A stretch of DNA of 22,885 bases, from the NCBI GenBank assembly GCA_002269645.1, contig NIVC01002223.1, forward strand, positions 1-22,885, given 5' to 3'. The translations under genes and the position numbers were made by a program. Numbering within the stretch: position 1 is the first letter of the stretch; the number at the start of each line of letters is the position of its first letter. The DNA is from Macrostomum lignano. Lineage: Eukaryota. Shown here piece after piece: positions 1,564 through 22,885 of this stretch. A model generated the notes under the pieces. The model was not told the DNA's origin. It did not search any database and was given only the letters and a program-made list of their open reading frames with translations.

Positions 1564-1933
1564 TCAACGCTCCGCAGCGGACGCGTCCACTAAAGCAGCG
1601 TCGGCCTCGGTGTCGGCAAATTGGCGGAGGAACTCGGCTTCGACCGGGTGCAGCCGAGGCGCCGGCACCACCAGTGAGTGCAGCGGCGGCCCGAGGTCGC
1701 GGCTGGCTATGTCGGCGAGGCTGCAGGCGGCGATGCGCTCGTCAGGACTGCCGAGGCGGGCCAGGCCGACGGTCAGGAGTCGCTCCGGCGGCGACAGCTG
1801 CTTGCGACGGTTCAGCCGGTTGCGCAGCTCGGCGGCGTCGGAGTCGGCCAGGAGGTCAGCGTTGTCCTCAGCGGCGGAGGCTTCGGCTAGTAGAGCCAGC
1901 AGCTGCTCAGCGGCCACGGAGCAGCTCATGAAT
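1564..1933 (-). CDS. DPH5: Diphthine methyl ester synthase, exon 3 (last coding exon)
   Basis: Acceptor ccgcAG (1935-1934). The split codon AG+A gives R, then FMSCSVAAEQLL...VGLARLGSPDERIAACSLADIASRDLGPPLHSLVV...LHPVEAEFL and TGA at 1566-1564. This matches the DPH5 C-terminal motifs (VGLARxG, DLGxPLHSL, HPxE). Confidence 0.95.
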
Positions 1934-1989
1934 CTGCGGCGCGGGAAGTCGGCAAGTACATGTAGCAGGGACAGCTTGGAGCGGGCCGG

Positions 1990-2610
1990 TGGGGTCAGGT
2001 GGGTCACTGGGTCAGGTGGGTGACTGGGTCAGGTGGGTGACTGGGTCAGGTGCGTCCCTGGGTCAGGTGGGTGACTGGGTCAGGTGCGTCCCTGGGTCAG
2101 GTGGGACACTGGGTCAGGTGCGTCCCTGGGTCAGGTGGGTCATTGGGTCAGGTGGGTGACTGGGTCAGGTGGGTGACTGGGTCAGGTGGGTGACTGGGTC
2201 AGGTGGGTGACTGGGTCAGGTGGGCCATTGGGTCAGGTGGATCATTGGGTCAGGTGGATCATTGGGTCAGGTGGGTCACTGGGTCAGGTGGGTGACTGGG
2301 TCAGGTGGGTGACTGGGTCAGGTGGGTCACTGGGTCAGGTGGGACACTGGGTCAGGTGGGTCACTGGGTCAGGTGGGTCACTGGGTCAGGTGGGCCATTT
2401 GCTTCAGGTGGATCATTGGGTCAGGTGGGTGACTGGGTCAGGTGGGTGACTGAGTCAGGTGGGTGACTGGGTCAGGTGGGAAACTGGGTCAGGTGCGTCC
2501 CTGGGTCAGGTGCGTCCCTGGGTCAGGTGGGTCACCGGGTCAGGTGGGTCATTGGTCAGGTGGGCCATTGGGTCAGGTGGGTGACTGGGTTAAGCGAGTC
2601 ACTGGGTCAG
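1990..2610. repeat. 17-bp minisatellite (CTGGGTCAGGTGGGT(G/C)A)n filling DPH5 intron 2 (1934-2717)
   Basis: Period 17 read directly (for example CTGGGTC at 2024 and 2041). Confidence 0.96.
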
Positions 2611-2717
2611 TTGAAGTCACTAGGTCAATATAGGTGAGGTCTGCTATCATCACTGAACTGTTGCGTGGCATTGTGCCCTCATCTGACCCTCTGACCTCTG
2701 ACTCGCGACGCACGCAC

Positions 2718-3150
2718 CTAGGCGGCTCGAACTCCGGCCGTCCTCTGAGAAGACTCTCCATCGTTGGCTCTCGCACCCGGATGTCCAGCAGGCACAGGGT
2801 GTGCAGATTCCTCTCCCAATTGCCCAGCAGTTTGTCCAGGAAGCTGCTAGGCCGGCTGACTGCGTCCCAGAACGGCACAGAGACGGTCTCGCCGAAGGTG
2901 TACAACTGCAGGCCGCAGGAGGCGACGGCGGTGAGTACGGAGGCGTTGTGCACCACCCGGTAGGCGACGCCGCGCTGCCTGGCCCGCATGGCGAGGTCAG
3001 CGTGAGTGGTAGCGCCCAGCGGGTCACCCACAACCAGGAAGGACACGTCGGCGCTCTGGGCCGCGGCGAGGATGACGTCGCCCTGCTCGACCAGGTCGCG
3101 GTCTGCCAGCTCCACTGGCCTGCCGTAGAATTCCTCTAAGCGGTCCTTGC
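2718..3150 (-). CDS. DPH5: Diphthine methyl ester synthase, exon 2
   Basis: Acceptor tcccAG (3152-3151), donor AG|GTGCGT (2717). Encodes (G)KDRLEEFYGRPVELADRDLVEQ...FLVVGDPLGATTHADL...VHNASVLTAVASCGLQLYTFGETVS...HTLCLLDIRVRE...EPP, the DPH5 signatures GDPxGATTH, HNAS, GLQLYxFG and HTLCLLDI. 433 nt keeps the phase. Confidence 0.96.
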
Positions 3151-3164
3151 CTGGGACAGATGGA

Positions 3165-3765
3165 CGGGATTGAGATCTGGACTGGGATTGGACTGGATTG
3201 GGATCAGGACTGGGATTAGACTGGATTGGGATCAGGACAGGGATTGGACTGGATTGGGATCAGGACTGGGATCTGGACTGGATTGGGATTTGGAGTGGGA
3301 TCTGGACTGGGATTTGACATTATTGGGATCTGGACTGGGATTGGGATCAGGACTGGGATTCTACTGGATTGGGATCAGGACTGGGATTCTACTGGATTGG
3401 GATCAGGATTGGGATTGGACTGGATTGGGATCTGGACTGGGATCTGGACTGAGATTCTACATTATTGGGATCTGGACTGGGATTGGGATCTGGATTGGGA
3501 GGAGGGATTCTACTGGATTGGGATCTGGACAGGATTGGACTGGATTGGGATCGACTGGAAGGGATTGGACTGGATTGGGATTTGGACTGGGATCTGGACT
3601 GGGATTGGGATTTGGACTGGGATCTGGACTGGGATTGGGATTTGGACTGGGATCTGGACTGGGATTTGACATTATTGGGATCTGGACTGGGATTTGACAT
3701 TATTGGGATCTGGACTGGGATTGGGATCAGGACAGGGATTGGACTGGACTGGGATCTGGACTGGA
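3165..3765. repeat. Compound short-word repeat (TGGGAT/CTGGAC/TTGGAC/TGGAT) filling DPH5 intron 1 (3151-3790)
   Basis: Read directly. It occupies nearly the whole 640-nt intron. Confidence 0.95.
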
Positions 3766-3790
3766 AAAACCAATAGTTGAGTAGACTCAC

Positions 3791-3911
3791 CAACGCTCAG
3801 AATGGAGGTGTAGGCATCAAGGAACACCCGGGCTGACGAGCGAATCAGCTCCAGGCCGCGGACCGTTACGTCCTCTGGATCGGACAGCCCGATGCCGATC
3901 AGGTAGAGCAT
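3791..3911 (-). CDS. DPH5: Diphthine methyl ester synthase, exon 1 (first coding exon)
   Basis: ATG at 3911, MLYLIGIGLSDPEDVTVRGLELIRSSARVFLDAYTSILSV, donor G|GTGAGT (3790). This is the typical DPH5 N-terminus. The spliced CDS is 121+433+370 = 924 nt = 307 aa plus stop. Confidence 0.96.
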
Positions 3912-5109: not shown

Positions 5110-5138
5110 AAGAGAGAGAGAGAGAGAGGAGAGGAGAG

Positions 5139-5195
<57 letters not shown>

Positions 5196-5468
5196 GAGAG
5201 AGAGGAGAGGAGAGGAGAGGAGAGGAGAGGAGAGAGAGAGGAGAGAGAGAGAGAGAGAGAGGAGAGGAGAGGAGAGAGAGAGAGAGAGAGGAGAGAGGGA
5301 GGGAGAGAAGAGAGAGAGAGGAGAGAGAAAGGGGAGAGAAGAGATGAGAGAAGAGGAGAGAGAGAGAGGAGAGAAGAGGAGAGAAGAGAGAAGAGAGGAG
5401 AGAGAAGAGGGAGAGAAAAGAGGAGAGAAGAGGGGAGATAAGTGGAGAAGAGGGGGGGGGGGAGAGAA
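5110..5468. repeat. About 360-bp near-pure polypurine (GA/GGA) low-complexity tract
   Basis: I saw only three T residues (5345, 5439, 5443) and no C in the tract. Confidence 0.97.
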
Positions 5469-7027
5469 CAGAGACACGTGGCCCGGGGCCGGAGTTTGCC
5501 TAACCCTGATCTACAGCCTGGAAATTTATCATCACACACTCGTAAGAAGTAGACTACAATTGCAGAGAAAGGCTACCTGCATAGCCAGACGTTTCTTGCC
5601 AGTCCAGATGTGTAGCTTGAGGTGTCCATGCCCCAGACAGCAAGCGGCAGGCAGATGACAATGACAGCGTGTGGGAGGTTGCAGCAGACCCGAGGAAAGC
5701 AGCTAAGGCTAAGAGAGAAGGCATAACCGATGCCCCTGGGCACAGAGAATTGGCCAAATCACGAGGCGCGCCCGTGAGCCGTGACCCGAGAGCACGCCGC
5801 CGCCAGCTGCTGGCAAGAACTGGCAAGCACTCTTAGTTTCGTCACTCTTTCACCTTTTTCTTGCTTGTCTATCTTTTTTTGTCCGAGAAAAGCCCGGCCG
5901 AGCTTATAGCTAACGAAGTGAAACTTTGCTGAATCGGCAAAAAACTCGGTACAAGCTGAGTCCAACTCAGTAGATAAGCAAGGAATTCCAACTTAACTGG
6001 AATTTTTTAGCATGACAAAAACCGATAGATAATAACACACGCGGGGCGTTCGAACTGAACCAGTGCGGCAGAAAAAGTGATTGTGATGCTAAAATTAGAC
6101 AGGGCAAAGAAAGCATATCTGTCCCGAAAGTTTTTTGTTACAGTCAAATGACACAATGAAGCAGCTCAATAGTAGAAAACAAAAACAAAATTGTCTTTCT
6201 AGCAGGAAACTTCGGAAAAATTTTTTTTGTTTTTGTCAAAACGGAAATCAACCAAAAAAGCAGACCAGAGACCCGATATTCCGTTGGGATTTTGCATCTG
6301 GGATTGCCATATTGCTTCCAAGCTGTGTAAAAACTAAACTAGGGTGCAAAGACAGACGGCCGATGACTCATACAGCTTGAACGAAGAGGTCGGGGGACTT
6401 GCAATGGAGCTGGAAAATGGGAAGGGATGAACGCAGGGCCCTTGGTCTATCCAGGAGTTAATTAAATAGCCGTCTGTCCCTGGAGCCCGCCGCCCACGCA
6501 AGTTCAGGCCGACAACAGAGCGGTTGGCCTACAGGCTGCAGCTCAGTTCTCAACTGGATGAATAGCGGAGACGGGATGAATCGCGGTAGACAAAGGCTGG
6601 GGGAAGCCTGGCAGAGTCTGGCATTGCAGACTTGGCGACAAGTTTGTTGCGGAGGCCAAGTATAGCGGAATTTAGGTCCACAGACGCAAGCGACAGACGC
6701 ACTTGGTTTCAGACGAAACTGACGAAACCCCATTCGAGCTGAGGGCTCATTCCGCTTCCACTCAGCCATTCATTCAGCTCTGGCTGGGGCGGGGCGGCCT
6801 TGGGTCACATGCTTAGCAACCGCCCTCACTCTCTGCCCCCCTCACCCGCGCCCCTCAGCCGCCCACGCCTATATTAGTAGCGGCCAGACGGCAGCGCTGG
6901 CCCCAGTGTCATCGCGGGACCAGCAGCAGACTCGACAGACGCAAACGAACGACTGTTACGACTAGCCTCGTCTAAGATTCCATTCTGAGGATCTACGCAG
7001 CTACTGAACACCAAGCCAAGAGAGAGC

Positions 7028-7103
7028 ATGTCTTCAATAAAGCTGATCGGCACTTTGTTGGCCCTCGGCCTGCTCTGGGCCATCAAAAGCGGAGACTCAA
7101 TTG
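7028..7103 (+). CDS. Uncharacterised secreted Cys-containing protein, exon 1 (signal peptide)
   Basis: ATG at 7028, MSSIKLIGTLLALGLLWAIKSGDSI with a basic n-region and hydrophobic h-region, then a consensus donor G|GTAAGT at 7104. Confidence 0.82.
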
Positions 7104-7203
7104 GTAAGTTATCCCAGCAACAGCATAGCAACCGTGATAGTAATGAAGGAATCATGTAGACTTCTTAACTAATAAAGCAAGTCTATAACGCACGAACCCG
7201 CAG

Positions 7204-7359
7204 CTGTCGGCGGCAACGGCAAGACCACTAAGCTAGCTCGCCAGATTCGCAGCACCGAAGGCACCACACAGTATCCGCCAAAAGATGTGAACGTGTCGTA
7301 CACAAGTTACGACGACTATTGTCCAAACGGGTACATAGCGTACAACAAGTACAACACCC
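7204..7359 (+). CDS. Uncharacterised secreted Cys-containing protein, exon 2
   Basis: Acceptor cccgcAG (7202-7203). Open frame (A)VGGNGKTTKLARQIRSTEGTTQYPPKDVNVSYTSYDDYCPNGYIAYNKYNT, donor C|GTAAGT at 7360. 156 nt, phase 1 to phase 1. Confidence 0.82.
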
Positions 7360-7455
7360 GTAAGTCAAGCTTGTAGTTGGGATTTTCCTTGCCAGAATTC
7401 AGCATAACCGATGCGGCAGATATCATTACTATTATTAATGTTTTGTTATTTTTAG

Positions 7456-7682
7456 GAACGGGAGTATTCGATTGCAAAATCAGAACGGCTGAGATCTGCT
7501 TCGCCCTGTGCGACATGGTGGGCGGCGTCAACTGGGACATGACCAACCCCACCGACATTCTGGACCCCGTCGAGCGCGAGAACTGGTACTGCCGAGCCCT
7601 GCCCAGCTACGCCACCAGGCCGTGCTACTACAAGTCCAAAAAAGAGATCGAGCTGGACGTGGCGGACATGGCGTGGGGCTAA
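7456..7682 (+). CDS. Uncharacterised secreted Cys-containing protein, exon 3
   Basis: Acceptor ttttgttatttttAG (7454-7455). Reads (R)TGVFDCKIRTAEICFALCDMVGGVNWDMTNPTDILDPVERENWYCRALPSYATRPCYYKSKKEIELDVADMAWG then TAA, with strong GC3 bias. Total 459 nt = 152 aa plus stop. Confidence 0.85.
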
Positions 7683-7928: not shown

Positions 7929-7934
7929 AATAAA
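7929..7934 (+). terminator. Candidate polyadenylation signal AATAAA of the secreted-protein gene
   Basis: AATAAA about 250 nt after the stop and before the 27-bp array. Confidence 0.45.
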
Positions 7935-8029
7935 TTACTTAAATGCCGCATCCATAGCAGCCATGTTCGATTTCAACTTGCAAAACAAATTGATCTTGCT
8001 ATTTTTGGTTTTTTTTTGGCATTGATAGT

Positions 8030-9030
8030 ATAAGCATGAGATCAAACATTGAGATTATGAGTATGAGATCATACATTGAGATTATGAGTATGAGATCATA
8101 CATTGAGATTATGAGTATGAGATCATACATTGATATTATGAGTATGAGATCATACATTGAGATTATGAGAATGAGATCATACATTGAGATTATGAGAATG
8201 AGATCATACATTGAGATTATGAGAATGAGATCATACATTGAGATTATGAGAATGAGATCAGACATTGAGATTATGAGAATGAGATTATACATTGAGATTA
8301 TGAGAATGAGATTATACATTGAGATTATGAGTATGAGATTATACATTGGGATTTTGAGAATGAGATCATACATTGGGATTATGAGTATGAGATCATACAT
8401 TGATATTATGAGAATGAGATCATACATTGAGATTATGAGTATGAGATTATACATTGAGATTATGAGAATGAGATTATACATTGAGATTATGAGTATGAGA
8501 TCATACATTGAGATTATGAGTATGAGATCATACATTGAGATTATGAGAATGAGATTATACATTGACATTATGAGAATGAGATCATACATTGAGATTATGA
8601 GAATGAGATCATACATTGAGATTATGAGAATGAGATCAGACATTGAGATTATGAGAATGAGATCATACATTGAGATTATGAGAATGAGATCAGACATTGA
8701 GATTATGAGAATGAGATCATACATTGAGATTATGAGAATGAGATCAAACATTGAGATTATGAGAATGAGATCATACATTGAGATTATGAGAATGAAGTCA
8801 TACATTGAGATTATGAGAATGAGATCAGACATTGAGATTATGAGAATGAAGTCATACATTGGATTATGAGAATGAGATCAGACATTGAGATTATGAGAAT
8901 GAGATCATTCATTGAGACAATTCTTGGGAGAATACATTGAGATTATGAGAATGAAGTCATACATTGAGATTATGAGAATGAGATCATTCATTGAGATTAT
9001 GAGAATGAGATCATGAGTATGAGATCATAC
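8030..9030. repeat. 27-bp minisatellite (GAGATTATGAGAATGAGATCATACATT)n, about 36 copies
   Basis: Unit read directly. A period divisible by 3 explains the spurious 277-aa and 286-aa ORFs. Confidence 0.97.
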
Positions 9031-9579: not shown

Positions 9580-10520
9580 TCTGATTATTCATTTGGATGC
9601 TGGGGTCTTTGTTGCATTGCTGATTATTCATTTGGATACTGGGGTCTTTGTTGCATTGCTGATTAATTCATTTGGATGCTGGGGTCTTTGTTGCATTGCT
9701 GATTATTCATTTGGATACTGGGGTCTTTGTTGCATTGCTGATTAATTCATTTGGATGCTGGGGTCTTTGTTGCATTGCTGATTAATTCTTTTGGATGCTG
9801 GGGTCTTTGTTGCATTGCTGATTATTCAGTTGGATACTGGGGTCTTTGTTGCATTGCTGATTATTCAGTTGGATACTGGGGTCTCTGTTGCATTGCTGAT
9901 TATTCAGTTGGATACTGGGGTCTTTGTTGCATTGCTGATTATTCAGTTGGATACTGGGGTCTCTGTTGCATTGCTGATTATTCATTTGAATACTGGGGTC
10001 TTTGTTGCATTGCTGATTATTCAGTTGGATACTGGGGTCTTTGTTGCATTGCTGATTAATTCATTTGGATACTGGGGTCTTTGTTGCATTGCTGATTATT
10101 CAGTTGGATACTGGGGTCTTTGTTGCATTGCTGATTATTCAGTTGGATACTGGGGTCTCTGTTGCATTGCTGATTAATTCATTTGGATGCTGGGGTCTTT
10201 GTTGCATTGCTGATTATTCAGTTGGATACTGGGGTCTTTGTTGCATTGCTGATTATTCAGTTGGATACTGGGGTCTTTGTTGCATTGCTGATTAATTCAT
10301 TTGGATACTGGGGTCTTTGTTGCATTGCTGATTTATTCATTTGGATACTGGGGTCTTTGTTGCATTGCTGATTATTCAGTTGGATACTGGGTCTTTGTTG
10401 CATTGCTGATTAATTCATTTGGATGCTGGGGTCTTTGTTGCATTGCTGATTAATTCTTTTGGATGCTGGGGTCTTTGTTGCATTGCTGATTATTCAGTTG
10501 GATACTGGGGTCTTTGTTGC
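9580..10520. repeat. 39/40-bp minisatellite (TTGGATACTGGGGTCTTTGTTGCATTGCTGATTATTCAG)n, about 24 copies
   Basis: Unit read directly, with a 40-bp ATTAATTCAT variant interspersed. Confidence 0.97.
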
Positions 10521-11641: not shown

Positions 11642-11924
11642 CTGATGGGGAAGGGGCCGATGGGGGGTTGCTAGTATAAAATGAGTGAGGAAAAAAAGAG
11701 ACAGAGGGATAAGAGACACGGGAATAGAGAAGGAAAGAAAAGGGAGGAATACGACAGATGGAAGGAGGTAGTTGACAAAGTAATAAGGGAGAGCAAGTGA
11801 GAAGCGGGGAGGTGAAGAGGGAGTTGCACTCCCAGCGGATGTCTATGGCCATGTCTGGACAGAGGGAGAGAAAATGACATTCTCGCGGCTTTCTTAGTCA
11901 TCTATTCAGTTCATCTGCCATCGT

Positions 11925-12300
11925 CTCTGTTTACTCTGTTTTATCTCCCTCTGTGACCAGTTCAACATTTTTATTCTTATCTCTCTCTCCTGTCTCCTTT
12001 CTGTCTTCTGATTGGCTCTTCAATCTGACCTTTTTCCTCAGTCCGCGCACTTCACCCACCCCTCGTTTCTGTTTACTCTGTTTTCTCTCCCTCTGTCTAG
12101 TTCAGTCTCGTTATTCTTATCTCTCTCCCCCTTGCTGCCTTCTGATTGGCTCTTCAATCTGACCTCTTTCCTCAGTCCGCGCACTTCACCCACCCCTCGT
12201 TTCTGTTTACTCTGTTTTCTCTCCCTCTGTCTAGTTCAGTCTCGTTATTCTTATCTCTCTCCCTTGCTGGCTTCTGATTGGCTCTTCAGTCTGACCTCTT
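11925..12300. repeat. About 133-bp pyrimidine-rich tandem repeat, about 3 copies, in SPOP intron 4
   Basis: CTGATTGGCTCTTC recurs at 12008, 12142 and 12274. Confidence 0.92.
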
Positions 12301-12787: not shown

Positions 12788-12805
12788 CTGCGAGAAGGCG
12801 ACGAT

Positions 12806-13125
12806 GGTCCTGACAATGTCTGACATTGTGATGATTGGTCCTGACAATGTCTAACCATTGCAATGATTGGTCCTGACAATGTCTGACATTGCAATGATTG
12901 GTCCTGACAATGTGACAATGTCTGACATTGCGATGGTTGGTCCTGACAATGTCTGACCATTGCGATGGTTGGTCCTGACAATGTCTGACTATTGCGATGG
13001 TGGTCCTGACAATGTGACAATGTCTGACATTGCGATGATAGTCCTGACAATGTCTGACCATTGCGATGGTTGGTCCTGACAATGTCTGACCATTGCGATG
13101 ATAGTCCTGACAATGTCTGATCATT
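12806..13125. repeat. About 31-bp minisatellite (TCCTGACAATGTCTGAC(C)ATTGCGATG(A/G)TTGG)n in SPOP intron 3
   Basis: Read directly; about 10 variable units. Confidence 0.93.
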
Positions 13126-13621: not shown

Positions 13622-13699
13622 CTGGAATTGAAGGCCATGCAATGCAAATTATTAAATGCTGATATTAAAATATAATATTTTCCTCGTTCTAATATTTAG

Positions 13700-14320
13700 T
13701 CACACTGATGCCTGCTTATTCTAATGTGTATTCACACTGATGTCCGCTTATTCTAATGTACATTCACACTGATGCCTGCTTATTCTAATGTGTATTCACA
13801 CTGATGTCCGCTTATTCTAATGTGCATTCACACTGATGTCCGCTTGTTCTAATGTACATTCACACTGATGTCCGCTTGTTCTAATGTGCATTCACACTGA
13901 TGTCCGCTTATTCTAATGTGCATTCACACTGATGTCCGCTTGTTCTAATGTGCATTCACACTGATGTCCGCTTGTTCTAATGTACATTCACACTGATGTC
14001 CGCTTATTCTAATGTGCATTCACACTGATGTCCGCTTGTTCTAATGTGAATTCACACTGATGTCCGCTTATTCTAATGTGCATTCACACTGATGTCCGCT
14101 TGTTCTAATGTGCATTCACACTGATGTCCGCTTGTTCTAATGTACATTCACACTGATGTCCGCTTGTTCTAATGTACATTCACACTGATGTCCGCTTGTT
14201 CTAATGTACATTCACACTGATGTCCGCTTGTTCTAATGTACATTCACACTGATGCCCGCTTATTCTAATGTACATTCACACTGATGCCCGCTTATTCTAA
14301 TGTACATTCACACTGATGTA
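13700..14320. repeat. 32-bp minisatellite (CACACTGATGTCCGCTT(A/G)TTCTAATGT(G/A)CATT)n, about 19 copies, SPOP intron 1
   Basis: Read directly. The AATGTACATT variant is a perfect palindrome. Confidence 0.96.
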
Positions 14321-15316
14321 CAATTATTTAACTTGGATCACGGAATAAAACGGTGTTCACTGAATATCATAACCAGCCCCTCACTCAAGAGTCAAAGTTT
14401 AATTCAACTTGTTATCAGTGAAGAACTTCAGAGTGCTACTAGCGTGAAATCGCGCCATTTCAAACAGCCGCGCGCACTCACAGCGCAGTTCTCTAATTCG
14501 TACTGGAAGCAATTTCTGGAAAATTCTAGAACTCGCGAGTAATGGACAGTCAGGCCGCCAGGCGGAGGGCAAGTGGCACCTTGGCGGGCATTTTTCGTAA
14601 CTGCGCACTGCCAGAGTCTAAACTGCAGATGGCTAAAAATAGACTTAGACAATTTTGTCAAGTGAAAAAGTCCTCTCCCCCGGACTGTTGCACTTTTCTC
14701 TCCTGGTAGCAAACTTTACAACAGACAGGAAATCATTGTTCACAAAAAACATCTAAGGGGAGAACTGAACAACTTATGTAGGGGATAAATTAGCAGCCCC
14801 GACTAACTGATATAACTAGAAGTGCAAGCACATTAGAATTGCCAGCCAAGTGTGGCGCCACCGCCTACTTAAGATTATTCTTATCGAAGCTATACTTATA
14901 AATGACCGACTAAGCCCTATACTAATTTATTACACTATAGAAGAACCCAGTTCTGTTATGTGACTAATAAAAATGATTGAACAAAGTTCAAATAGAGCGC
15001 TAACCTTTGACATTTGAATGCTTAGATTAAAATAATTTGTAGCCAAATAAAGCAGGGGTCACTGCAATGTCATCGCAGCTAAGATCTGATATGCCAATTG
15101 AATTACACAGATATTGCAAACTAGATGAGGATAGTAGCTGGTCCCTCCATGGACTACTATAGAAAGCATCTGGACCGGAAGGGTTATTGAAACAGCAAAG
15201 TTCGATACGATTGGAAATCACTCTCAATCAGATGGATGAAATCTGAATTCAAGGTAGTCACTATTGATAAACAAGATTAATACTTTCTGGATTTTGTGAG
15301 GTGCTCTATCACTTCT

Positions 15317-15767
15317 GTCTGTCTTGGTGTCTGTCGGTCTGTTTGTCTATCTGTCTTGGTGTCTGTCTGTCTGTTAGTCTGTCTGTCTGTTTGTCTATCT
15401 GTCTTGGTGTCTGTCTGTCTGTTAGTCTGTCTGTCTGTTTGTCTGTCTGTCTTGGTGTCTGTCTGTCTGTTAGTCTGTCTGTCTGTTTGTCTGTCTGTCT
15501 TGGTGTCTGTCTGTCTGTTAGTCTGTCTGTCTGTTTGTCTGTCTGTCTTGGTGTCTGTCTGTCTGTCTGTCTTGGTGTCTGTCTGTCTTGGTGTCTGTCT
15601 ATCTGTTAGTCTGTCTGTCTTGGTGTCTGTCTGTCTGTTAGTCTGTCTGTCTGTTTGTCTGTCTGTCTTGGTGTCTGTCTATCTGTTTGTCTGTCTGTCT
15701 TGGTGTCTGTCTGTCTGTTAGTCTGTCTGTCTTGGTGTCTGTCTATCTGTTTGTCTGTCTGTCTTGG

Positions 15768-15800
<33 letters not shown>

Positions 15801-15900: not shown

Positions 15901-16647
15901 GGACCAGGAGCGGCCCAGACCCAGTTAAGAACCAGGAGCGGCCCAGACTCAGTTAAGAACCAGGAGCGGCCCAGACTCAGTTAAGAACCAGGAGCGGCCC
16001 AGACTCAGTTAAGAACCAGGAGTGGCCCAGACTCAGTTAAGAACCAGGAGCGGCCCAGACTCATTTAAGAACCAGGAGCGGCCCAGACCCAGTAAAGAAC
16101 CAGGAGCGGCCCAGACCCAGTAAAGAACCAGGAGCGGCCCAGACCCAGTAAAGAACCAGGAGCGGCCCAGACTCAGTTAAGGACCAGGAGCGGCCCAGAC
16201 CCAGTCAAGAACCAGGAGCGGCCCAGACTCAGTTAAGAACCAGGAGCGGCCCAGACCCAGTCAAGAACCAGGAGCGGCCCAGACTCAGTTAAGAACCAGG
16301 AGCGGCCCAGACTCAGTTAAGGACCAGGAGCGGTCCAGACTCAGTTAAGAACCAGGAGCGGCCCAGACTCAGTTAAGGACCAGGAGCGGCCCAGACCCAG
16401 TCAAGAACCAGGAGCGGCCCAGACTCAGTTAAGAACCAGGAGCGGCCCAGACTCAGTTAAGGACCAGGAGCGGTCCAGACTCAGTTAAGAACCAGGAGCG
16501 GCCCAGACTCAGTTAAGGACCAGGAGCGGCCCAGACCCAGTCAAGAACCAGGAGCGGCCCAGACTCAGTAAAGAACCAGGAGCGGCCCAGACTTATTTAA
16601 GACCCAGGAGCGGCCCAGACTCAGTAAAGACCCAGGAGCGGCCCAGC
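15901..16647. repeat. 28-bp minisatellite (ACCAGGAGCGGCCCAGACTCAGTTAAGA)n, about 26 copies, SPOP intron 1
   Basis: Period 28 (ACCAGG at 15931 and 15959). Confidence 0.97.
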
Positions 16648-17592: not shown

Positions 17593-17773
17593 ACTTCAAA
17601 TCTACGTGTAGTTAATTCAATTTTTCGTTTTTTGCTGCCTCCTCCAACGGGATGCGTAGATTGCTAGTCTAAGCTAAAATATGAATACAAAGATCAAAGC
17701 TACACATACATCAAACTAATAAACGCATTCAGACTCAAAGCCCTGCTCAAATAAAAGCAGACTTTCGACTCAC

Positions 17774-18018
17774 CATCGCAGTTTATCATTCGGCCCCGCC
17801 GAGAACGTAGACGATTTGAGAACTTCGCCCATCTCCTCTCGACAGAAGCTAAAATTATGAATAGCCCACAGGTAGGTGAATTTAGTAACTTTCATCTGGG
17901 TGCAGCACCAGCTCTCGGCCACGGGCGGGCCCAAATCCGGCGGCATAGAGGGACTGCCCGGCCGGGACGAGGAGGACCCGGCAACCGAGGTCGGGTCGTT
18001 GGTAGAGTCGAGCATCAT
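17774..18018 (-). CDS. SPOP: Speckle-type POZ protein, coding exon 1 from the first genomic in-frame ATG (true start may lie further 5', see findings)
   Basis: MMLDSTND...[52 protein letters not shown](W), donor TG|GTGAGT (17773). Matches [11 protein letters not shown] and [12 protein letters not shown]. Spliced total 1182 nt = 393 aa plus stop. Confidence 0.9.
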
Positions 18019-18173
18019 GATGGGGTCCGGCGGCGGGCGCTGCTGGATGACAGGGCGCAGAGGCGGCAGCTCAAGTCCCAGGTGAGGCGGCTGGCCCACG
18101 CCCGGACTGTGCAGCCTGGGCTGGTGATGAGGAATGGCTGCGGCGGCTGGAGATGCTTCGAGTCTTGCTGCTT

Positions 18174-19573: not shown

Positions 19574-20575
19574 ATGGCGTCGCAAGCAGAAAGGCAGAGT
19601 CATGAACTCAATTTGGACGACGCCGACATGGCCGAAGCATGGATGCAGCGACTCTCAGCCACAGCGCGCATCAAAAAGCTAACAGACTCGGATGAGGCTC
19701 GGGACAAAACTGACCTATTCTTATCTAAGGCCGGCCTTCAGGCAATTCGCACGCTATCCCTAATGGCAGCACCAAAAAAACTTGATGAGATGAAATTCGA
19801 TGACATCAAAAAGCTAGTTGACGAGACGATCCGGCCGAAAAAGTCACTTGTAATTGCCGAACGCACCAGGTTCCTCAGCTTGAAGCAGGAATCGGGTGAG
19901 ACCGTCATAGCCTACTACCGGAGGCTGAGGGCTGCTACGTCACACTGCGAGTTTGAAAAGCTGGGCAGCAAGCAGACAAAGGAGGACGACATGATTACCA
20001 TGCAACTAATTGACGGCCTAAACTCCTCAGAGCACAAAAAAAGAATCTTGGAGCGCCTACAAAACGAAGATGGAGAAACGCCACTCGACAGGATCTTGCA
20101 GAATTTGCAGCAGCTTGAGCAGATCCGTGACTACAACACGCCGGCTCCTGCTGACATCGCCTTCGCCGGTCAACAAAGGGGAGTCTCCTCACCTGCCAAG
20201 CCGCAGCCGTCAATCAAATGCGGGTTCTGCGGCGCCAATCACCTGAGGGGCAACTGCCCAGCCTACGGCAAAAAATGCTCCAAGTGCCAAAAAAGAAATC
20301 ACTTTGCGGCTGTCTGCAGATCACGAGCTGTCCATCAGGAAATCGCAGTCGATGCAGAAGAAGCAGACGTGTATACTCTTAGCCCCAACAGAGCTAAAGC
20401 GGGCCTCTTCAAGACCATCAAAATCAACGGCCAGGGTATCTCAATGCAAGTCGACACCGGAGCTGAGATCAGTCTGATTCCGCAGAACCTCTGGCGCCAG
20501 CTGGGCCGGCCCACCCTGCGCAAGTGCAGGAGAATTCTCCGGCAGTTCGACGGTTCCAGCATTGCCTGCCTCGGG
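19574..20575 (+). pseudogene. gag: Retrotransposon gag and N-terminal half of the aspartic protease (genuine frame to about 20575)
   Basis: CGFCGANHLRGNCPAYGKKCSKCQKRNHFAAVC knuckles from 20219 and MQVDTGAEISLIP (D at 20453). The frame shifts at GGG 20573-20575. Confidence 0.88.
19575..19589 (+). other. Putative primer-binding site TGGCGTCGCAAGCAG (tRNA-Ser-like)
   Basis: Begins with TGG one base after the putative LTR end. Its reverse complement CTGCTTGCGACGCCA resembles eukaryotic tRNA-Ser 3' ends (from recall). Confidence 0.5.
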
Positions 20576-22885
20576 AATTCACTGCGTCACTCGAGACCAA
20601 CTCGAAATTCGTCACGATTGACCTGGTTGTCACCGCCGCGGAGAAGAAGCACGGTCTGCTTGGCATGCACAACATAAAGCTCCAAGAAGACGCGGTCACC
20701 ATCAACGCGGTCCAACAGCTCGGATGCCTCAAAGGGTTCAAAGCTAAGATTAGACTGGTGGAAGGAGCCAAAGCGTTCTATTGTGCTGCCCGGTCCGTGC
20801 CGCTACACCTCAGAGACTTGGTGGTGCGCGAGCTGCAAAGAATGGAATCCGAGGGTATCATTGAGGCGGTTTCTCCCGGAGGCAGCCAATCGCCTATTGT
20901 CAACGTGCTCAAGCCAAATGGAAAGGTTCGTGACTGTGCCGATTTTAAAGCTGGTGTCAATCACCAGATATGCAATGACACCTACCCGATCCCGGAGATG
21001 GAGACGATTTTTTCTGAGATAGCAGGCATGTCGCACTTTGCTAAACTGGATCTCTCTGATGCTTACCTGCAAATCGAACTCGATGAAGATAGCCGAGAGG
21101 TGACGACAATCGCGACACCTTTGGGTCTCTTCCGCTACAAAAGGCTGGTTCCCGGGCTGAAATCTGCATCGGCCATTTTCCAGAAAGCCATGGAAACAAT
21201 CCTACAGGATGTCAGCAACAAGATTGTCTACCAGGATGACGTCCTCCTGGGAGCGAAGTCCAACGCCGAATTAAGGAGCAAAGTGCAGCACGTTCTCCAG
21301 ACGATGCGAACTGCTGGAATGACGATCAACCTAGAAAAGTCCAATCTAAGCGCAACGGAGGTCAGATTCCTCGGCTACAGCATCAGCGCGAGCGGGATCA
21401 CCCCGGACCCCAATCTGGTCGGAAAAATTCGCTCAGTGAACTCGCCGAAGGACAGAAAGCAGCTCGAATCGTTTCTAGGACTTTCCAACTTCTTCGGGAG
21501 GTTTATTAAGAATTACTCTGACGTCATAGAACCGCTCAATCAACTCCGGGGCCGAAACGTTGAGTTCGTCTGGGGCCCAGCCCAGGAAGCTGCCTTCACG
21601 CGAATCAAGGATCTGCTGTGCAGCGAGCCTGTAATCAAGCCGTATGACAAGCACAAAGAGACCACGCTCACTACCGATGCTAGCGAGAAAGCCATCGGAG
21701 CGATCCTCTCGCAGGGCAACCACCCGATCATGTACTTCAGCCGGAAACTGAGCAGTGCAGAAGCAGGGTATTCAAACATCGAGAGAGAGGCGCTGGCGAT
21801 CGTTTAGGCTATGGAGCGTGCGAAACAGTTCCTATTAGGGTCGCGCTTCACACTCAGAACGGATCATCGCCCGCTGGAATACATCTTCGGGTCGATGGGC
21901 AATCAAACTGATGGCCTTTGACTATGACATCGTCTACACTAAAGGCGAATCGATTCCGCAAGTAGATGCACTTTCGCGGCTGGATTTTGAAGGTGACAGC
22001 GACACCGAGCTGACAGAGCGGCCGGAAAGCATCATTCACTGGACTGGCGAGGCTGTGATCCGTGGCAGGAGCTGAAATCAGAGACCCAAAGGGACCGACT
22101 GCTGCTTGATGTCATGAAACGCGTTGCTGTCAACAGATGGTCAAACTGCTCGCCAGCCGAACGACCTTTCAAGGCCATCCGACACGCCCTCACGACCGAC
22201 GACGGAGTTCTCTGCTACGGTGATCGCCCAGTCATCCGGCTGTCCTCCGACAAGGCGTTCTTGGAATTGTGCACGATACGCATCAGGGATCTGGCTCAAC
22301 GCGCGCTCGCCTACAGAACTCAGCCTGGTGGCCCGGCTATTGCAGCGACGTCGAGGCCTACGTTCGAGGTTGCCCGACCTGCTCAAGACTGCGCCCGAGT
22401 GGTCTGGAGAGTGTCCACAGGTGGCCCGACGAGGAAAAGCCGTGGCACAGGGTCCACATGGATCATGCGTGTGTGCCGAGGGTCGGACTCCTGCTCATTC
22501 TAGTTGACGCTATGTCCGGCTGGCCCGAGGCTGTACGAGTGCAAAACAGGGACGCGGCGACAGTCAAGCGGGTGTTGCAGACAGTCTTTGCTAGGAACGG
22601 CGTGCCTCATGTGCTGGTCAGCGACAACGCCGCCGAGTTCCACGACGCCAATCTGATCGCCTGGCTGGAAAGAATCGGCTGCCGCGCCATCAAGACTCCC
22701 CGCGACACCTCAGTCTAACGGCTTTGGCCGAGCGGATGGTCCAGTCTATCAAGAGAGCATCTGCGGCGTGGGACATCCGAAAGCTACGAGTCGTTCCTGT
22801 CCAGGGTACTCCTAAACTACACAGGTGTGTGCCGCATGCTGGGCGCCAGCAGAGCCCGTCACAGCTCATGGGTCGACAACTACGC
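20576..22885 (+). pseudogene. pol: Retrotransposon pol (protease C-terminus, RT, RNase H, integrase), disrupted
   Basis: RT with FAKLDLSDAYLQI and YQDD (21229-21240). TAG at 21805-21807 where W is expected. Probable deletion at 21892/21893, then RWAIKLMAFDYDIVYTKG..VDALSRL. Integrase VHDTHQG..WWPG..CPTC..HMDH..VSDNA, and SNG(L)AERMVQSIK recoverable across indels. Confidence 0.9.

Follow-up and report, generated by a model that had tools for sequence, protein, structure and literature searches.

A three-exon gene on contig NIVC01002223.1

We analysed contig NIVC01002223.1 of the Macrostomum lignano assembly GCA_002269645.1, whose whole length of 22,885 bp is referred to here as the window, and found at 7028-7682 on its forward strand a three-exon gene for a small six-cysteine protein, predicted to be secreted and belonging to a family that appears to be restricted to flatworms. 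The joined exons amount to 459 nt in a single reading frame that ends in TAA, with a conceptual product of 152 amino acids (aa). Both donors read G/GTAAGT (the slash marks the splice position), and the acceptors read CGCAG/ in intron 1 and TTTTTAG/ in intron 2. In the same frame a stop codon occurs 5' of the ATG, and an unspliced intron 1 leads to a stop after 43 aa. Exon 1 (7028-7103) carries the ATG and the predicted signal peptide, from M1 to about S24/A26, and ends in phase 1. It is separated by intron 1 (7104-7203; 100 nt, GTAAGT...CAG) from exon 2 (7204-7359), which encodes the putative basic propeptide up to R41, a disordered linker and the tyrosine-rich N-terminal part of the domain with C65. 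Intron 2 (7360-7455; 96 nt, GTAAGT...TTTTTAG) falls, again in phase 1, in the codon directly 5' of the invariant TG-F-C motif. Exon 3 (7456-7682) supplies the domain core, that is, the C84 strand, the C92-x3-C96 helix, W104, the strands with C123 and C134 and a C-terminal helix, followed by TAA.

The coordinates of the deposited gene call, 7028-7682, coincide exactly with those of our model, and its product also has 152 aa; our conceptual product is 100% identical to the GenBank entry 'hypothetical protein BOX15_Mlig017821g3/g5' of M. lignano. The gene is thus already deposited and not unannotated. To make the deposited annotation, RNA-seq reads were assembled into a genome-guided transcriptome with StringTie/TACO, transcript boundaries were taken from trans-splicing and poly(A) reads, and open reading frames (ORFs) were called by TransDecoder (PMC5730564). 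Since this annotation derives from RNA-seq, the splice junctions of the gene have transcript support, at second hand. We conclude that the three-exon gene is real, far beyond chance. An earlier note on this DNA had proposed three in-phase exons with GTAAGT donors and a 152-aa product; splicing and the identical deposited coding sequence agree with it, and our translation is identical to the string that it gave. Its remark that the ORF track displays only the last exon also holds, as exon 3 alone is visible in the six-frame list, within an ORF at 7377-7682. The cysteines that it placed at 65, 84, 92, 96, 123 and 134, the R38-R41 site and the sequon N55-V-S are all present in the translation.

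A predicted secreted cysteine family of flatworms

We scanned 1.84 billion representative proteins exhaustively with HMMER (phmmer) and then ran two profile searches, inspecting matches with expectation values (E) of up to 1. The phmmer scan returned four matches, all of them from flatworms: two M. lignano paralogues (Mlig005456 with 57% identity and E = 2.7e-33, and Mlig014950/Mlig029358 with 56% and 2.5e-28), a protein of the cestode Hydatigera (3e-05) and one of Schistosoma spindale (2e-04). In the profile searches, 13 flatworm proteins reached E-values of 1e-18 to 1e-48. These searches added further cestodes (Echinococcus multilocularis with two genes, Taenia crassiceps, Anoplocephala, Mesocestoides, Hymenolepis/Rodentolepis and Dibothriocephalus), with E. 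granulosus (EGR_03869/EGR_03870) joining as cluster members, as well as the non-cestodes Trichobilharzia, Heterobilharzia and the monogenean Protopolystoma. No homologue outside Platyhelminthes was found by the profile searches at E<=1. The earlier note had called the protein an orphan and had proposed a search for paralogues. That search yielded Mlig005456 and Mlig014950/Mlig029358, and the orphan status is refuted by these two old paralogues, by four near-identical gene copies (see below) and by homologues in schistosomatids, cestodes and a monogenean.

Six cysteine columns are common to all members of the family. Two further cysteines are found in every neodermatan member and in no Macrostomum member, and these two probably bond each other as a fourth disulfide. 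In the alignments, G80, F82, C84, T88, C92, L95, C96, W104, C123, R124, C134 and Y136 are invariant or nearly so. Its relatives include the E. multilocularis 'expressed conserved protein' CDS37945.1 and 'expressed protein' CDS37946.1, which share both the six cysteine columns and the three-exon layout of the M. lignano gene. The same six columns and a signal peptide are found in Hymenolepis microstoma HmN_000522200 and in the S. spindale, Trichobilharzia, Heterobilharzia and Protopolystoma proteins. Neodermatan members differ from the M. lignano protein in their two extra cysteines, in having no propeptide or RxxR site and in a shorter C-terminus.

We compared gene structures by threading each protein through its own genomic locus. 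In all genes examined (the Macrostomum paralogues, Echinococcus and Schistosoma), a phase-1 intron marks the point where the signal peptide ends. A second phase-1 intron, just before TG-F-C, is present in BOX15_Mlig017821 (NT/RTGVFDC), in Mlig014950 (NT/TTGVFDC), in both E. multilocularis genes (DE/MTGNFKC and DE/STGNFKC) and in S. spindale (DN/ATGNFMC). This second intron has been lost in Mlig005456, so that two of the three Macrostomum paralogues keep both. The retention of intron position and phase across classes supports the exon model as well as homology across the phylum. By these comparisons, the M. lignano protein belongs to an unnamed, predicted secreted family of six or eight cysteines that is restricted to flatworms and is defined here. 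Literature keyword searches for a described flatworm-specific secreted cysteine family gave nothing relevant, and in full-text searches no paper was found to mention Mlig017821, HmN_000522200 or the EGR_/ECG_ identifiers.

Echinococcus and Anoplocephala are 84% identical across the domain, whose identity falls to 40-47% when cestodes are compared with schistosomatids and to 24-30% when Macrostomum is compared with Neodermata. Among paralogue pairs in M. lignano, the proportion of synonymous differences (pS) is 0.68-0.77, which is saturated, and that of non-synonymous differences (pN) is 0.30-0.35. Two diverged gene copies differ by three synonymous changes and one non-synonymous change, a ratio of non-synonymous to synonymous change (omega) of ~0.1 from small counts. 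Judged from these substitution patterns, the gene is under purifying selection and evolves slowly, unlike a fast-evolving reproductive protein. The excess of synonymous change among copies and paralogues also backs the gene model itself.

Several loci of the family have features of their own. Two members stand in tandem in E. multilocularis on LN902847.1 (5840-6512 and 8001-8527), on the same strand and ~1.5 kb apart, and the 281-aa 'two-repeat' protein of Hydatigera (P0006) probably represents two such neighbours joined into one gene model. The family member P0016 appears to be mis-spliced at its C-terminus, with a GTGTGT donor following ...HYRC. Mlig005456 (NIVC01002410.1 and NIVC01000807.1; 6001-6523) lies on the opposite strand, apparently inside an intron of a topoisomerase III-beta-like gene.

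Secretion signal and putative propeptide

The N-terminus of the BOX15_Mlig017821 product has the features of a signal peptide: an n-region with K5, a hydrophobic segment at L6-I19 (mean Kyte-Doolittle value 2.5) and small residues at -3/-1 around 21-26. An N-terminal hydrophobic segment is found in every family member aligned, and the M. lignano protein has no other hydrophobic stretch long enough to span a membrane. The features of a predicted secretory-pathway protein are thus established from the sequence and from the comparisons.

A candidate site for furin or another proprotein convertase, R38-Q-I-R41, is encoded at 7239-7250 (+), with the cut expected before S42. The pattern L-[AL]-R-x-x-R/S, in which the slash marks the expected cut, is kept by all three Macrostomum paralogue groups, as LARQIR/S here, LARLKR/S in P0009 and LLRRSRR/S in P0008. 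The groups vary in length and sequence, with insertions and deletions, between the signal peptide and the first cysteine. Retention of R-x-x-R/S amid this divergence, among paralogues that are saturated at synonymous sites, supports the view that a furin-type convertase removes a short propeptide. The paralogue sites RLKR and RRSRR match the full furin consensus (R-x-K/R-R), whereas RQIR is the minimal R-x-x-R, and the neodermatan homologues have no comparable propeptide or RxxR site. Residues 21-53 have a predicted local distance difference test score (pLDDT) below 50 in a full-length AlphaFold2 model (described below), so that the site is probably exposed. Cleavage there would divide the protein into a propeptide (27-41) with an isoelectric point (pI) of 12 and a mature part, S42-G152, of 111 aa, 12.8 kDa and pI 4.6. 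These observations bear out the earlier suggestion of a small secreted six-cysteine protein with a signal peptide and an RxxR site, in that the hydrophobic N-terminus is found family-wide and the putative site is kept in three paralogue groups.

The N-glycosylation sequon N55-V-S, read from 7290-7298 (+), has a counterpart (N-M-T) in the same alignment column of Mlig005456 and none there in Mlig014950. Two other possible modifications were noted. The protein ends in A-W-G before the stop (residue G152, window 7672-7682), where the glycine could serve as an amidation donor; the paralogues end in ..EWP and ..GYE, and the C-terminal glycine is not conserved. Y61-D-D-Y64 is a possible context for tyrosine sulfation and is partly conserved.

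Predicted structure and domain searches

The first AlphaFold2 model, of the full-length protein from 6 sequences, had a pLDDT of 66. The second, of residues 52-152 from 15 sequences, reached a pLDDT of 88.1 and a predicted template modelling score (pTM) of 0.80. In this second model, a strand at ~81-85 carries C84 and a helix at 89-98 carries C92 and C96. A long loop that contains W104 is followed by two strands, 121-125 with C123 and 133-138 with C134, and residues 139-151 form the C-terminal helix.

A Foldseek search with the pLDDT-88 model found no neighbour among 350,542 PDB chains (best E of 3.4, with template modelling scores of 0.27 or less) and none in BFVD, and the pLDDT-66 model was likewise without a Foldseek match. 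Pfam recognised no domain at E<=10 in the M. lignano protein or in its paralogues, and its scan of 14 relatives produced no meaningful match. Searched against PDB sequences, the protein alone was without a match, and the family profile matched only the short C1q signature discussed below. The family had not been recognised in the earlier note, and Pfam, the PDB sequence search and Foldseek all fail to connect it to a well-characterised family. Because Foldseek is weak on small disulfide-rich domains, the absence of a known fold is a provisional statement.

Gene copies and genomic neighbourhood

Near-identical copies of the BOX15_Mlig017821 gene are present on four other M. lignano contigs (L001, L003, L004 and L012), two of them without any substitution in the gene. 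The L004 copy has four exonic differences (three synonymous, the fourth being T47S) and three intronic ones. The L012 copy (NIVC01001440.1, 2217-3468) is 99.76% identical and has one G missing at each of two sites in exon 1 (window-equivalent 7049 and 7077) and one in the 5' flank. It is annotated merely as a 55-aa ORF, and is either a young pseudogene or the product of long-read indel errors. The DV1 line has a duplicated karyotype, and its assembly is redundant (PMC5730564); the near-identical copies fit both.

On the strand opposite to the six-cysteine gene lie both of its neighbours in the window, a gene with a TP_methylase domain (diphthine-synthase-like) upstream at 1564-3911 (-) and a MATH-BTB (SPOP-like) gene downstream, from 11366 to ~18099 (-). 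An ORF at 17770-18099 (-) resembles a first MATH exon. The TP_methylase and MATH-BTB flanks recur at the L001 and L004 copies; at L003 no neighbour was called. In the immediate surroundings of the gene, TATATTA at 6871-6877 (+), ~150 nt 5' of the ATG, may be a TATA box, and AATAAA at 7929-7934 (+), ~250 nt 3' of the stop and ahead of a 27-mer minisatellite at 8020, may be a polyadenylation signal.

Long minisatellite arrays crowd the window, with repeat units of 16-134 nt present in up to 39 copies, and there is also an (AG)n tract. These minisatellites and tandem tracts occupy 551-1408, 1992-2627, 3161-3764, 5111-5442, 8020-9014, 9581-10520, 11921-12300, 12798-13125, 13686-14319, 15314-15798 and 15903-16646. 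The array of 37 copies of the 27-mer begins ~340 nt 3' of the stop codon of the gene and yields long spurious ORFs on both strands. Tandem repeats make up 15% of the M. lignano genome (PMC5730564), and the repeat density of the window agrees with this content. At the end of the window (19574-22885, +) are ORFs of the long terminal repeat (LTR) retrotransposon type, encoding a Gag with a CCHC knuckle, a protease, a reverse transcriptase and the first part of an integrase. These ORFs are in different frames, and the contig ends before they do.

Discussion

Our combined findings suggest, with a probability of roughly 0.6, that this gene is transcribed and encodes a secreted, convertase-processed, disulfide-stabilised protein that acts outside the cell as a binding protein or ligand and is under purifying selection. 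On the proposed route, the signal peptide encoded by exon 1 would bring the protein into the endoplasmic reticulum, and the six cysteines could form up to three disulfides, predicted to lock a compact alpha/beta domain. A furin-type convertase would cut after R38-Q-I-R41, as the conservation of this site suggests, and remove the short and very basic propeptide. The acidic mature part, S42-G152 (~12.8 kDa, possibly N-glycosylated), would then be released and may serve as an extracellular binding or ligand-like module. A ligand-like role is suggested by the small size of the protein, by a gene number of one to three per genome, with no large expansion, by conservation across the phylum in animals whose glands and life cycles are very different, and by purifying selection. 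It is also suggested by the conserved surface-type residues T88, W104 and R124.

A more specific version of this reading can be offered tentatively. The protein may be a signalling ligand peculiar to flatworms, comparable to a hormone or cytokine, whose fold is unseen in solved structures. Such a ligand would be ancestral at least to Macrostomorpha and Neodermata and would have been retained in Echinococcus, Taenia and the schistosomatids (S. spindale, Trichobilharzia and Heterobilharzia), with the propeptide added in the Macrostomum lineage. We regard this version as possible rather than probable.

Several points weigh against a processed extracellular ligand or binding protein. The motif RQIR is minimal for furin, and a comparable propeptide is missing from the neodermatan homologues. 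The transcript support reaches the gene through the method of annotation. The ligand role is drawn from the evolutionary pattern, and a structural or glandular secretory product would look alike. Furthermore, our literature searches found no expression or phenotype data, and the four Mlig gene identifiers did not occur in the supplements of the Macrostomum papers searched.

The main alternative, to which we give somewhat less credence than to the signalling ligand, is that the protein is an exocrine gland product of seminal fluid, adhesive, cement, mucus or rhabdites, discharged to act as a material or to manipulate the mating partner. Many secreted proteins of M. lignano are gland-specific and belong to no known family, and the small size, the predicted signal peptide, the acidic mature part with 11 tyrosines among its 111 residues and the possible glycosylation site would suit such a product. 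Yet Macrostomum, tapeworms, flukes and a monogenean all retain the family, with omega at ~0.1-0.2, and the glands and mating of these animals differ greatly. In addition, neither the supplements of a seminal-fluid screen nor those of a study of reproduction-related genes contain the identifiers, which weighs little as these files may use other identifiers. The earlier note had offered gland, seminal, defence and signalling roles side by side. Our best reading is an extracellular binding or ligand-like role; phylum-wide conservation and the low omega are a poor match for a fast-evolving product of glands or seminal fluid.

We consider it unlikely that the protein is a divergent member of the PAN/Apple group (PROSITE PS50948, Pfam PAN clan), binding proteins or carbohydrates like other PAN modules. 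It resembles this group in having a C-x3-C helix that may be disulfide-linked to beta strands, and UniRef tags it, together with its Hydatigera, Hymenolepis diminuta and Rodentolepis nana homologues, as 'Apple domain-containing protein'. The neodermatan motif [ST]-[AG]-x-x-C-x3-C-x5-C-x-x-W-x-F recalls the PAN helix region, and hhalign aligns that stretch; the label probably stems from this local motif. We compared the PAN cysteine pattern, C...C-x3-C-x5-C...C...C with pairing 1-6, 2-5 and 3-4. The M. lignano protein lacks the third cysteine of C-x3-C-x5-C, whereas neodermatan members have all three. The PAN models of Pfam did not match it or its paralogues at E<=10, PAN_4 scored E = 1.2 in one cestode homologue (9.7 bits against a cut-off of 27), and hhalign against five PAN/Apple sequences gave a probability of 3.5%. 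No PAN/Apple chain is among the Foldseek PDB matches at E<=10, which leaves the five-stranded antiparallel sheet and helix of PAN unsupported. Moreover, UniProt names differ within the family, with 'Kp4 domain' and 'G_PROTEIN_RECEP_F2_3 domain' (G-protein-coupled receptor family 2) given to the paralogues, and such discordance indicates that the automatic labels stem from weak profile matches. The KP4 killer-toxin domain was rejected, since P0005, the paralogue isoform that bears this name, was unmatched in Pfam (E<=10) and no such chain appeared in the Foldseek lists from PDB or BFVD.

Less plausible again is a defensin-like antimicrobial or toxin-like peptide with a cysteine-stabilised alpha/beta fold, freed by removal of the propeptide. 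A layout of signal peptide, propeptide, RxxR and mature peptide is common among cysteine-stabilised alpha/beta peptides. The predicted order of elements (strand, CxxxC helix, strand, strand) is as in these peptides, the helix packing against a beta-hairpin, and neodermatan homologues carry a C-x-C (C-R-C) on the next strand. However, the M. lignano protein reads C123-R-A at this position, and the C-x-C sits on the middle rather than the last strand. Its putative mature part, at 111 aa and pI 4.6, is acidic whereas defensins are cationic, and the domain exceeds the defensin/scorpion-toxin motif two- to threefold in size and has an extra C-terminal helix. Neither Foldseek nor Pfam gave a defensin-like match, and the low gene copy number shows no expansion of the kind seen in defence families. 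The layout of a signal peptide, a basic propeptide, R-x-x-R followed by Ser and a disulfide-rich domain is also that of furin-processed proproteins, such as precursors of pro-hormones, growth factors and toxins. These form a processing class and not a homologous family, and the M. lignano protein would belong to it by virtue of its candidate site. The cysteine spacings of insulin-like, CHH/ITP, cystine-knot and eclosion-hormone peptides did not fit, and the two neodermatan-only cysteines are lost together.

A C1q/TNF-type domain surviving as a remnant in the N-terminal half is very improbable: the family profile does match the C1q B signature (F-x5-N...Y...TG-F-x-C-x-V-P) at E = 0.0056 over residues ~58-86, with matches to C1q-like and adiponectin chains and a sub-threshold Pfam C1q score (E = 0.25) in two members, but the match spans only ~28 residues, the adiponectin value of 4.8e-07 comes from three repeated copies in a single-chain trimer with single-stretch E-values of 0.35 or worse, the predicted fold is a 100-residue alpha/beta one against a jelly roll of 130 residues, and Foldseek returned no C1q or TNF chain. 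The resemblance is probably a local motif. With the PAN, C1q and cysteine-stabilised alpha/beta comparisons failing, the protein is placed solely in the unnamed flatworm family.

The gene itself was already deposited, and uncharacterised small secreted disulfide-rich families are common, so that the finding is useful rather than startling. What appears to be new is an undescribed family, restricted to flatworms by our searches and without a recognisable domain or, provisionally, fold. It is small, predicted to be secreted and well conserved in cestodes and schistosomatids, with no Pfam model and no PDB neighbour of a confident structural model. RNA interference works in M. lignano. Together with the transgenesis that exists for this worm (PMC5730564), this means that the function of the family could be tested there. 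Proteins that are found throughout the flatworms and are absent elsewhere are candidates for lineage-specific biology, and this family may provide markers or targets that are selective for tapeworms and flukes.
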